Shown: positions 42,435-47,107 of the stretch, piece by piece
Layout: each line of letters starts with the position of its first letter
Position numbering within the stretch: position 1 is the first letter of the stretch
Assembly: GCA_964199315.1 (NCBI GenBank)
Contig: OZ116702.1
Span: forward strand, 13,516,001-13,580,000
Source of the DNA: Orbicella franksi
Lineage: Eukaryota
Reading direction: 5' to 3'
DNA: 64,000 nt
Made by a program: the position numbers and the translations under genes
The notes under the pieces: generated by a model
The model's input: only the letters and a program-made list of their open reading frames with translations
Database searches by the model: none
What the model was told of the DNA's origin: nothing

Positions 42435-45400
42435 CACGGTCACAAATGGGCTGGAGAAACATTTGCTCAAGCTCTCTGTATCATTCCCGAAGCTGAAGTG
42501 GAAAAGAAGACAAATCTTCAAAAGAAACAAGGATGGAGAAATACTGTAAGAGAAAGAAAAAGAGCCATTGAGAAGAAATTGCAAGAAACTTCATTTGTAA
42601 CGTGAACAGACCCCATTATTTAGCTTACAATATATAACAACCAAATTTTATGAAATAATTTAGGTACATGTATATATGCAAATTTACATGTATCATTTTC
42701 TTTGGGTGTTATACATACCCCAGAATCCACATGGATAGAAGTCAGTTACTACAGGTGTATGTACCAATCACAACTAATTATTTTCATTAGTCATTCAAAA
42801 AGCTAGAGAAAAGATTAAAATACCATAAACTGAAGGGAACAAAGGGAAATACAAATGCCATGGATTTTCTATAGCAAGACGAAAATGTGCAAAACTTTTT
42901 TTCAATAAATAGTATAAAAAAATTTACCTTGGTGAAACATCCCTTAACAAAAGCCAGTGTCACAGTTGCATACACTGTTCATGTTCATTGCTGAGAAAGT
43001 CCATTCACAAGTAAAAAACATTTGTAAAAATAACTGTCTCTCACATTAGGTGTCTAGGAAATCGGCAGTCATATGCTGCACGCCAAAGAGAATGAATGGC
43101 ATCTTCCTTTGAGAGCAAGCAAGATGCAAAAGAAACAAGAGACAATGAGATGGCTGCAGAATTGGCAGGAAAAAGAAGAAAACTGGAAGATTTGTCAACA
43201 TTACCTGGAACTGTAATGGTCTAAAAGCAGAAGTACAGGGATATGAAAGTAAACTGGACTGCCCTTGCCAGACAGTATCAAATAAAAAATAGTACTGGAA
43301 AAATTGCAAAGAATGGAGGTCAGATTGCCAAAGATTGTTTGTTAAATCAAGGGGTTAATGTACGATTTACATGTAAGAGACTATCCTGAGGCTGGGGAGA
43401 GGTGTGTACAGAGAAAGAAATTGCGAAGTCCTGGAGGTAAGAACGGTTAAGAATTCAAGAGTTTTGTTGCCATGAATAATACCATGCCGTTTTAAAAACC
43501 AGAATTCTCATGGATCTACGCAAACAAAATTATGTCAAAAGTTCAAGTTGAAACATTGACAACATCACTCTGAGAAGTCTGTACTACAATGGGATCCTCA
43601 TACAATGTTGTCTACTGATTAAAGCTGCCAAATTACAAATAAAATCTACCAAATTTAAAACAAAGCCATTTATTATAATGTCATTATGTAGCTAACCTGA
43701 ACATTGTTGCACTTTCTCTTTCCAGGTGAAATCAGTGTACCAACTGCAGAAACAAATGAAAAAGTCAAAGAAAAAGTCAAAGAAAAAAATCAGAAATGGA
43801 GAAATCAACATTGAGTAGTTAATCGTTCCAAAAAAATATGAAAAGTTTATCCTCCATGACAAAAATGAAATTAAAAAAATTGAGTTTTTTGTTGAGGGGA
43901 GGAAAATGCCACTCAAAGAAATCTGTGAACGAACACTGCAAAAGAACAAAAGATATTCCAGGTCCCACACAGATGAGCACTATAGCAATATGACAAGAAT
44001 TGCTGTCAGTAGTCGCCTGCAAGAGCTGAATGAGTTTGATGACACAGAAGGGCTGCCTGCAATGAAGGAGAAACTGAAAGAAATGGAGAGAACAAGACAT
44101 CTTGCAGCTTGGCATGACCATTCTAGTGTGGCAAATCATGGGTACCTGATGTTCCTAGCATGTGTTCTCTATGATCCTGCAAGTCATCTGACTGACAAAG
44201 AATATGAGAAAAAGTATGGAGAGCCAATAGAAGTGCAGAAAATTGTTGAAGAACCTGAACTTTACATTGTTGCCAGGTAACATTTCCGACCATGTTCAAT
44301 AACAAATTGATTCAATCAGCAATTCAAAAGACACATGACAGAGATTAAAATTATCCCATTTCTGTGCACAGACAACCATTTTTTGCAAAGATGTAGTAGA
44401 TTTAATGTGGACTTGAAATGCTTTGAGAATAGCGCTGTTTTAAATTACAAGGTAAGACCTATATTAAAATTAAAGAAAACTAATCTCAATAAGTCGCAGA
44501 CTTTCCCACCCATATCTTCAGAAAAATGAACTTGTATTAAGAGGACACCTGTATCAAATGTTGTCTGCTTAATACAGATCTCACTGCAAATGCTTCGGTT
44601 AGTCAAGTGTATAGCAATTACTTCAAAATAATTCTTCTTTACTAGGTCTGGTGATAGTGACCTGGACCAACTTGCCTATTCAGAGACCAGGTGTACATGT
44701 CTTAGGAACCTGGAGTATGAAATAGATGTAGATGGAATTCCTATAAAAGATGTGATGAGGTTCTGTAAAGGTGATTGCCCTTCACTAGAATTTGAATGTG
44801 GAAACCAGCGAGGAGGATACTTCTACTGCCCGGGATGCAAGATTCATGCTGCCCACACATTTGAGCTTGATCATGCATATCGTTGTCCTCACATAACACT
44901 CCGAGAAGGTCAACAGGCAGTGCTGAAAGGAAGAGTTGGATTTCAACAGTCACTTGAGTTACATCCAAAGCCTTTGGCCAATTAGCAAAAAGAAGATTTG
45001 AAAAAAGAAGTGATCGGAAGAGGGCTGGAAATTGATGGCAACAGGAAAGAAGACTACCAGAAGGCTCTAACGACTGAACTTGCAGGCCAGTGCAGGGTAC
45101 CAGCACTTTTGTTTCATGGACCCAGGACTCCACTCGAAGACCTTGGGCTCAGTAACTATGAAATTCTACCTCGTGCACCAATGCATGACCTCTCTAACCA
45201 CATCACCAACTTTTAGAAGAACTGCTCAACCATGTTACTGGGGATGTAGCCTCAGTTTTACAAGACTGCAAAGATCTCACTGTTGGTCAAAAAGAAAAGA
45301 AGAGAGCCTTTGACCTTCGTTGCCTCATCATCATGATTTCTTCACAGTTGTGTGGAAAAGCCCCCTTAAAAGTGCCGCAGCTGATTGATACCCTTGTGCA

Positions 45401-47107
45401 GATGGCAGAGATCCTGTACAAACCAGAGAAAGACAGATGTCCAAAGTTGATCCTGGGGTATCACAACTTGAGTTTCTACCATGCCATTCTCTGTCTGGAG
45501 GTTATTGGCACTCAGCCGACCAGATAATGACTCATTGCAAATTATATGGGAAGTACTAGCATGGTTTGGTTCAGCATGCCCCTATTCAATTACGAATAAC
45601 CATTGGAGAATCAAGTAATTCTGAGGATGAAGAGAGATTTTTTTAACAACATAAAGGGCATCACCAGGGAAACGTCTTCACAACATTCTAGTCACATAAT
45701 TGGACTTATTATCATCAGACTGCAGGCAGAGCATGCTTTCCAAGAACAATTGAGCATCTCAAGAGCAGATCAAGATATCTCTGTGAAGAAGCTTGCCAGG
45801 AGCCTGCCTGATTTTCCTGACACCTTCTTCCAACCCTTTGTTCTCCAAAAGTACAAAAAGCAGTGGCAGGCTCACTTAGAGAAAATAAGCGACTTCCTTC
45901 TTCCAGACAGGGAATCTGGTGGGAACATGATGTTCAAAATGTAATCTTCCATGACTCCAAGCAGCATCAGAAAACAAGCCCTAGTGGGCCTGTTCTCCAT
46001 CATTTCAGATCTAGTTCACTCAAAAGAGAGGAATGCTATTTGGATCAGTGCTGGTTGGAATGCCTTGAAAAGGGAATCTGTCTTCCTACACACTGGCTGT
46101 ACCTTGAAGACCAGGAGAACCCAAACTAAGTCAGACTAATAACCACAGATTTTCTCAGTGAGAATGGCAAAGCAAATGCATAAAATGAAAGCAGACAAAA
46201 TTTTGAATAAAGACAAAGAGAAGAGAATGACGAAAATGTGGAAGGACACATTGATAGCAGACAAGATGAGGAAGATGATCATGAGAATGAAGTTCTGATA
46301 AGTGTGAAGGTGACATCTGCAAATGATGATATACTAGTCCAAGATGAAGAAAATCTCACTTCTAATGAGATGTTTCCCCACGAGGATGGTGAAAGGTACA
46401 CACAACACCTACATGTAAGCACTAAAGGGGTTGGAGAAACAATTCAAACAACAACACAATCTGAAACTGAAAGTAATCCATTCTGTGTACTACATGTGAA
46501 TCAAGAGCAACCTCCGTTTGATAGTGATATAACTGCAGGGACATGTCTTGCACACAGGAAAGACAATGAGAAAGCAGGAACCACTCACTGCAGACTAAAC
46601 TTGGCAAGGCAGTTGAGATTGTTTTGGGCCACACAAAAGAAGTTGTACAATTTGACATGTTAAGATCAAGACTGAAGTCAAACCAGGGAAACAGTTTTCT
46701 CTATGTGAAGTACATGGCATTGAATGAACTTGCTAGCACTCAAGCAAAGGTGTTAAACAAGCACAACGGTCTAAAGATTGAACTTAAGGATTGGGAGAAC
46801 CTTTACTTTATAGAAAACAACTTTAAATCACCAACAGTGTCAGATGTCAAGCAGTCATCCAAAGGCAGCCAAAATTCTTAAGACAATAAGATACACAAAA
46901 GCACTGCTCAAAGAGTGGACAATAGAACTTGACTGAATTTCACAATGAGATAGCCCCAAGGGTTTTTGTGAAGTGAACCAAAAGTTCACTTGAAAGGTAA
47001 AAAAAAATACAAAAAGAGCCAATTTTTGACCGTTTCAGTCACAACCAAGTTTGAAAATGCTATTTTCGAAAGAAAAAAAAGCCTATAGGCTCCATAGGAA
47101 TCTTGTG
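42435..47107 (+). mobile_element. DNA transposon relic encoding a spliced RAG1/Transib-core-like DDE transposase; putative right end CACAAGA on the minus strand
   Basis: Exons ~42435-42596, ~43050-43437, 43726-44276 and 44646-~46900. WHD, KGD..CPGC, PMHD, Y*HGLVQHAP and SEDEE occur in RAG1 order. Many stops and frameshifts. Confidence 0.65.

Follow-up and report, generated by a model that had tools for sequence, protein, structure and literature searches.

The question raised by a 64,000-nucleotide stretch of the Orbicella franksi genome (contig OZ116702.1, positions 13,516,001 to 13,580,000; referred to as the window hereafter, with positions counted from its first letter) is to which element, and to which group of transposons, a transposase gene with the catalytic residues of RAG1 belongs. 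A first-pass annotation had regarded positions 42435–47107 as a transposon of a sister lineage of Transib/RAG. Our analysis indicates that the sequence is the decayed gene of a larger transposon at 35641–53604, which has CTCAG ends, a 2-bp target duplication and a kinase gene, and that its family probably lies inside the CMCT clade of transposons. The earlier interpretation was right on the fold and the catalytic layout, wrong on the termini, and over-specific on the kinship.

A decayed, intron-containing transposase gene occupies 43036–46933 of the window and lies inside a larger DNA transposon. Its parts are as follows.

43036–44277, + strand: N-terminal part of the transposase, with the helix-turn-helix (HTH)-like block VNWT..NGGQI, the pre-catalytic region and the first catalytic D (WHD, 44116)
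44278–44645, + strand: intron, phase 2, GT..AG, splitting IVAR/SGDS
44646–46126, + strand: catalytic core of the transposase, frame-shifted and stopped, ending in the C-terminal domain WQAHL..HHFRSS
46570–46933, + strand: conserved C-terminal tail of the transposase, with LGKA..VLG.., KVL.. and EWEK..LLK.WK

Three-frame translation of 42400–47200, with a codon check of each position, placed all the motifs reported by the first-pass annotation, from WHD to SEDEE, at the codons given there. The second catalytic D is found at 44773 (RFCKGD) and the cysteines of CPGC at 44827 and 44836. These are followed by the H of PMHD at 45184, the two histidines of KY*HGLVQHAP at 45560 and 45575, and the E of SEDEE at 45632. 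A SAP-like helix pair is inserted in the catalytic core of this copy. The phase-2 intron proposed earlier for the 44276/44646 region was also verified. The YIVAR exon ends with AG/G at 44277, the intron begins with GTAAC at 44278 and ends with a pyrimidine tract and AG at 44645, and the intact relatives P0004 and P0022 span this point without a gap in the alignment; because of the canonical ends and this gap-free alignment, we regard the intron as real. It occurs at the same point in the window and in the related copies L001, L005 and L006, while none is present in L040 and L042; in L005 and L006 the length of the intervening stretch differs from that in the window. The gap at 43390–43789 within the N-terminal part is likely a second intron or a decayed stretch, and the first ~240 residues of the full-length relatives are absent from the window copy. 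As was also recognized earlier, the copy is dead: its reading frame shifts at least five times and is interrupted prematurely at 44983, 45214, 45525, 45557, 45644 and 45942, so that no protein can be made. It could move only with a transposase supplied in trans.

The mutual positional relationship among this gene, its relatives and the repeats around it provides the limits of the element. The terminal features are as follows.

35641–35666, + strand: left terminal inverted repeat CTCAGGTATATTAAGGAGTGGGTCAA, with the GT duplication outside it at 35639–35640
53579–53604, − strand: right terminal inverted repeat CTTGAGTATTTTAAGGAGTGGGTCAA, matching the left arm at 22/26 positions, with GT at 53605–53606
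53554–53566, − strand: right subterminal box CCCCCCAGCAGCG (CCCCCAGCA), conserved in the window, L005, L040, L042 and L041

From these features, the transposase gene appears to sit in a cut-and-paste DNA transposon spanning 35641–53604, which is about 9–10 kb long when two nested long terminal repeat (LTR) retrotransposons and other insertions are left out. Its inverted repeats are 26 nt long and start with 5′-CTCAG-N5-TTAAGG, the element thus being bounded by CTCAG..CTGAG, and the reverse complement of 53579–53594 is the sequence at 35651–35666. The CCCCCAGCA box is located about 25–35 nt inward of the right end. The related copy L005 (~75% identical) is colinear with the window over the transposase, 47191–47522, 51302–51504, 52383–52636 and 53507–53595, and it terminates at the same sequence as the right end of the window element. 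The gaps in this colinearity are attributable to the two LTR retrotransposons nested in the window.

When all the ends are aligned at TTAA, a conserved and lineage-specific 10-mer, CTCAG-N5, is seen outside it. The ends are CTCAGGTATA (left) and CTTGAGTATT (right) in the window, CTCAGGTCAT in L005, CTCAGTGCAG and CTCAGTGTAG in L040, and CTCAGTGCAC in L042. Left ends of the form CTCAG-N5-TTAAGG are also found upstream of the transposase gene in L013, in L002 (a contig from an ocean metagenome, which encodes P0057 of 1354 residues) and in L041 (Nematostella LOC125563042); the right arm of L041, CTCAGTGCCTCTAAGG, has CTAAGG instead of TTAAGG, that is, a mutated TTAA. Accordingly, all seven copies for which any end was found (the window, L005, L040, L042, L013, L002 and L041) have CTCAG-N5-TTAAGG flanking the gene on one side or both, and the protein identity among them drops to about 35%. 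Since these ends accompany the transposase down to about one-third identity, they are its own ends and not a shell borrowed from a Kolobok element. Nematostella and coral-type assemblies contain intact relatives flanked by the same ends, while no ends were found around relatives in most of the short metagenome contigs. A TTAA duplication combined with 12-bp GGAGTGGGTCAA repeats was ruled out by the aligned termini with their conserved outer CTCAG-N5.

Each of the three two-ended elements has a 2-bp direct repeat directly outside CTCAG..CTGAG (window, GT/GT; L040, GA/GA; L041, TG/TG), and by chance three matches of this kind would arise with a probability of about 1 in 4000. The flank of L040 also exists as a diverged, unfilled paralogous copy, which reads ...GTTAC GA GTTTGTTAAGAGC, with a single GA at the insertion point; for the window insertion, no paralogous empty site was found in the sequence searched. 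As a separate observation, the minus strand at 11742–11757 of the window carries TTAAGGCTAAACGGGC and then CCCCCAGCA ~30 nt inward, which resembles the right end of a related element; neither a CTCAG outer part nor a partner end was found there.

These limits replace those of the first-pass annotation, for which the span 42435–47107 was the transposon and CACAAGA its terminus. That span is only part of the 35641–53604 element. The sequence CACAAGATTCCTATGGAG is present in the window a single time and lacks both a matching left arm and a target duplication; it is not part of the stretch common to the window and L001, which stops 18 bp short of the proposed end. The supposed left terminus near 42440 marks where an unrelated, very high-copy repeat stops, at ~42444–42447 (word depth of 4644 versus 111 alongside; DNA contigs, one run), and beyond this point many different continuations are seen. 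The 5-bp duplication that had been expected gives way to the 2 bp found in the three two-ended elements and at the unfilled paralogous site. In a search for inverted repeats around 42435–47107, none was better than in shuffled sequence. The breakpoints of L001, a copy in a long-read assembly in ENA whose positions 6166–10413 correspond to 42730–47089 of the window (83.6% identity), were also considered as element ends and rejected: no repeats or duplications are present there, and L005 continues to be colinear up to 53595.

A second gene and several insertions lie between the two ends.

36028–40683, + strand: nested LTR retrotransposon 1, with reverse transcriptase, RNase H and integrase; LTRs at 36028–36182 and 40529–40683, outer limits approximate
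40684–42447, + strand: CTAACGG arrays (40684–40884 and 42122–42407) and the end of the high-copy repeat, not in other copies of the element
47130–47567, + strand: first exon-like open reading frame (ORF) of the second gene (weak HTH), conserved in L005 at 7534–8040
47687–50744, + strand: nested LTR retrotransposon 2, with gag knuckle, RNase H and integrase zinc domain
52104–52397, + strand: protein kinase exon of the second gene, with HxDLKxxN and DFG (Pkinase, E 3e-10)

The LTRs of the second retrotransposon are at 47687–47810 and 50621–50744, and its outer limits are at about 47560–51300. CTAACGG occurs in 20 copies in the window versus 2.5 expected, with a period of 63 bp. The second gene, composed of the HTH and protein kinase parts, is located downstream of the transposase in the same order in the window and L005, and the kinase exon of the window has colinear counterparts in L005 at 8464–8859 and 9349–9624; in L040, no kinase ORF was seen. 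No RAG2-like gene had been noticed earlier, and indeed this second gene is the only other gene of the element. At 14798–15163 of L040, a fragment of an ISXO2/IS1595-like transposase lies within the element (Pfam, E 1e-11).

The transposase belongs to a family whose distribution was surveyed by phmmer, using the 113-residue piece encoded at 44644–44982 against 1.84 billion representative sequences. At E < 1e-3, 441 relatives were obtained, many of them long and intact. The members with species names come from Actinostola, Nematostella, Paramuricea, Hydractinia, Saccostrea, Mytilus and two Branchiostoma species, and all of the named ones are annotated as 'hypothetical' or 'uncharacterized'. More uncharacterized members were present in AlphaFold DB, including one that bears the annotation 'SAP domain-containing protein'. 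Thus, as far as can be judged from sequence, the transposase family seems to be an unnamed one that occurs among marine invertebrates, namely in corals, sea anemones, hydrozoans, bivalves and amphioxus. The sequencing runs in which the stretch itself is present come from corals and coral metagenomes. The Branchiostoma members are intact, namely the genes L003 (B. floridae; 1098 residues) and L004 (B. lanceolatum; 1269 residues). Two other intact relatives, P0284 and P0286, were seen between or beside genes for a Pox_A32 ATPase and an rve integrase, which are Polinton/Maverick-like neighbors.

The pieces of the window transposase have no Pfam match, and ten long members gave no Pfam family besides one borderline SAP match. 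SAP is the sole recurring Pfam match, found in 13 of the 34 aligned members, where it follows the CxxC and precedes the next conserved block. In the alignment of these 34 members, C202 and C205 hardly vary, if at all, the consensus retains H445-x4-H450, and the E block occupies 466–469. The N-termini of seven full-length members consist of one C...H..CxxC motif, a basic stretch and then the HTH-like block with the pattern VNWT..L...Y......G..P.N.GQI; only four Cys/His residues are conserved there, which fits one zinc. The long N- and C-terminal extensions, described by the first-pass annotation as unlike RAG1 or Transib, are specific to the family according to the alignments. No description of CTCAG..CTGAG ends or of the SAP insertion was found in the papers searched.

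Structure prediction was performed with AlphaFold2 for residues 1–640 of the intact relative P0022, using the 34-sequence alignment (predicted local distance difference test score (pLDDT), 91.5; predicted template modeling score (pTM), 0.92). In the Foldseek comparison with the PDB, the top 43 matches were all RAG1 chains (E 3e-9 to 1e-6, ~570 columns, 11–15% identity), followed by BbRAGL (3e-4), HzTransib (9e-4) and the P element transposase (7e-3). VIA-align ranked RAG1 first (Z 16.6), then BbRAGL (13.8), HzTransib (13.6) and the P element (10.1), with ISCth4 and retroviral integrases at about 8. In the RAG1 alignment, residues 3–509 of the model lie on RAG1 545–1004, over about 400 residues. 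The core is predicted to be a D..D..E core of the RNase H fold, in which the C(2)C after the second D and the H(4)H before the E fall at the zinc-ligand positions of RAG1. Judged from the model, the resemblance to RAG1/Transib is real and extends across the whole core, and these comparisons bear out the spliced DDE transposase with RAG1-type catalytic and zinc-ligand layout recognized by the first-pass annotation.

Whether this resemblance singles out RAG1 is a different matter. Among the predicted structures of the ESM Atlas, the nearest named clusters were Transposase_21 (EnSpm/CACTA) or Plavaka (template modeling (TM) score 0.50–0.57 over 370–430 residues), and no RAG1 cluster was found among the matches listed of the 99 nearest models; a feature search returned both the Transposase_21/Plavaka and the RAG1 clusters. 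One ESM Atlas match includes proteins with DUF1258, which we take to be a mark of nematode Mirage-type proteins. Since no solved CMC-type structure was among the matches, RAG1 could come out first in the PDB whichever member of the wider group is compared. The structural check suggested earlier thus gave an answer in two parts: RAG1 is the best match in the PDB, but the predicted EnSpm and Plavaka structures match about equally well, so that a sister relation to Transib/RAG in particular does not follow. Family profiles searched against the PDB sequences reached neither RAG1 nor Transib, and the 34 members searched against Pfam at E up to 10 gave no match to RAG1, Transposase_21 (PF02992), Plavaka (PF18759) or THAP.

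The motif layout leads to a wider placement. The CMCT clade comprises EnSpm/CACTA, Mirage, Chapaev, Transib, Plavaka, ESTA, along with Lanisha, and the signature D..D..C(2)C..H(4)H..E, with C(2)C and H(3–4)H, is that of the whole clade; its duplications are 2–5 bp and its termini mostly 5′-CA..TG-3′ (PMC12730594). Since the signature is clade-wide, it does not mark Transib/RAG1 alone. The 'full RAG1/Transib signature' of the first-pass annotation is therefore present residue by residue, but it is not specific to those two. Of the motif strings of the family, only one QKGG, in an unrelated protein, was found in the supplementary files of the CMCT paper.

Several observations weigh against our interpretation of the gene, the element and its placement. 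One is that no profile link to a named CMCT lineage or to RAG1 was obtained, so that the clade membership rests on the motif layout and the predicted structure. Another is that the RNA contigs over the locus are unspliced and contain no splice joints, although they may be DNA carry-over; two raw RNA runs yielded no reads. The GT duplication of the window carries less weight than the duplications of L040 and L041, because the first five bases of the right repeat are degenerate. L001 shares only the gene region with the window, with sharp and unexplained breaks. The last is that the amphioxus genes L003 and L004 have no recognizable inverted ends within 10 kb; these genes may accordingly be domesticated or old insertions.

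These points have to be considered together with the alternatives. The reading of the first-pass annotation, in which 42435–47107 is a unit of a sister lineage of Transib/RAG with CAC-type ends and a Transib-like 5-bp duplication, is consistent with the RAG1 chains being the best solved-structure matches and with the D-to-CxxC, HxxxxH and H-to-E spacings, which differ by at most one residue from the values quoted for mouse RAG1 by that annotation. The CAC termini are, however, refuted by the real CTCAG..CTGAG ends with their 2-bp duplication; the motif layout is common to the whole CMCT clade (PMC12730594), the predicted structures of EnSpm and Plavaka type match no worse than RAG1, and the Pfam RAG1 models match 0 of the 34 members. 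We consider this reading very unlikely. A Kolobok-type shell at 35655–53590, TTAA-duplicating and GG..CC-ended, with the RAG1-fold gene as a passenger, would explain why TTAAGGAGTGGGTCAA is found at both 35651 and 53594, and TTAA duplications with RR..YY ends define Kolobok (PMC9587614). Nevertheless, the conserved, lineage-specific CTCAG-N5 outside every TTAA puts the TTAA inside the repeat, the right arm of the Nematostella L041 has CTAAGG there, the outer boundary is the one that agrees with the 2-bp duplications and the unfilled paralogous site, and the same ends accompany the transposase family down to about 35% protein identity. The Pfam scans of full-length members gave no THAP domain, and four of the five family motif strings searched are absent from the published Kolobok alignment, the fifth, HFRS, appearing twice in an unrelated context. 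Such a shell is therefore extremely improbable.

The possibility that deserves more weight, though we still doubt it, is that the family is an already catalogued CMC lineage (Repbase/Dfam), for instance, a Mirage-like 2-bp group or an amphioxus/Nematostella Chapaev group, and that only this copy is new. The duplications of CMC elements, 2–4 bp (bioRxiv 10.64898/2026.08.26.747230), agree with it. On the other hand, the N-terminus fits one zinc and not the two-zinc Chapa domain of Chapaev, the ends are not CA..TG, and the papers searched provided no account of such ends or of a SAP insertion. In comparison with these alternatives, a CMCT family with its own CTCAG ends and 2-bp duplication is the interpretation that we prefer. 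A narrower form of it, an undescribed superfamily-level CMCT lineage (CTCAG-N5-TTAAGG ends, 2-bp duplication, SAP in a RAG1-like core, a kinase partner in corals) that branches next to Transib/RAG1, we consider unlikely; if true, it would provide a new outgroup for reconstructing the origin of the RAG1 core.

The window as a whole is a dense nest of transposons. At 56694–57500 and 57822–58823 (both − strand), a YqaJ-like exonuclease ORF adjoins an ORF that combines a SAP-like helix pair and a CxC..CxH motif of SWIM-like type. A DDE_Tnp_4 transposase of the Harbinger/ISL2EU type is located at 55040–55933. At 16079–17986 (− strand) and 18626–22055 (+ strand), a 635-residue DUF7869 ORF adjoins a reverse transcriptase ORF of the non-LTR type (RVT_1 and zf-RVT).

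In active relatives, the transposase would bind the CTCAG..TTAAGG ends, with its N-terminal HTH-like region presumably serving as the DNA-binding region, and would cut the element out and insert it elsewhere through a staggered cut of 2 bp. Excision may proceed as in RAG1 and Transib, by analogy with which nicking would be followed by formation of a hairpin on the flanking DNA. The intact and apparently young copies in Nematostella and in coral-type assemblies could serve for activity tests.

The present analysis provides a first anatomy of a widespread, unnamed transposase family of marine invertebrates, covering the ends, the 2-bp duplication, the intron, the SAP insertion and the partner kinase. 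Two corrections follow for the reading of similar loci: the D-D-CxxC-HxxxxH-E layout is no fingerprint of Transib/RAG, and TTAA beside GG at both ends is no proof of Kolobok. Being a further deep branch that has a RAG1-like fold, the family could be of use in rooting structural comparisons of RAG1, Transib and the CMC enzymes, while by itself it leaves the picture of the beginnings of V(D)J recombination unchanged.

Comparison with the known systems places these features in context. In the inner part of the ends, TTAA with GG mimics a Kolobok TTAA duplication with RR..YY termini, but the TTAA is internal to the repeat and the real duplication is the 2 bp outside CTCAG; moreover, the family has no THAP domain, H2CH finger or D(G/C)RYN-type block, and its motif order is different (PMC6004289, PMC9587614). 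Chapaev is defined by an N-terminal two-zinc Chapa (NZD-like) domain (PMC4411706; bioRxiv 10.64898/2026.01.24.700457), whereas the family appears from its sequences to have a single C...H..CxxC motif without a Pfam match. EnSpm/CACTA and Plavaka resemble the family in structure only, with no match to Pfam PF02992/PF18759. Mirage, said to be a CMC group with 2-bp duplications, is similar by description only, in this reported duplication length and in the CMC-type catalytic signature.

RAG1, RAGL and Transib (PDB 6xny, 6b40 and 6pqx) are the best solved-structure matches (Z 13.6–16.6, 365–410 residues), and D, D, CxxC, HxxxxH and E occur in the same order and with near-identical spacing in the family; the identity in the structural alignments is 9–15%, with no profile match. 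Transib/RAG have a 5-bp duplication and heptamer-like CAC(A/N)GTG ends, in contrast to the 2 bp and CTCAG-N5-TTAAGG of the family. The family also differs from RAG1/RAGL in having no RAG2-like partner, nonamer-binding region or NZD/RING, the accompanying gene of the lineage being that of a protein kinase. With the CMCT clade as a whole, the family has no detectable sequence similarity to the named lineages, and it has N- and C-terminal domains of its own, a SAP domain in its catalytic region and CTCAG..CTGAG (CT..AG) ends as against the mostly CA..TG ends of the clade; what it shares with the clade is the catalytic and zinc signature, together with a 2-bp duplication that falls within the clade's range of 2–5 bp.

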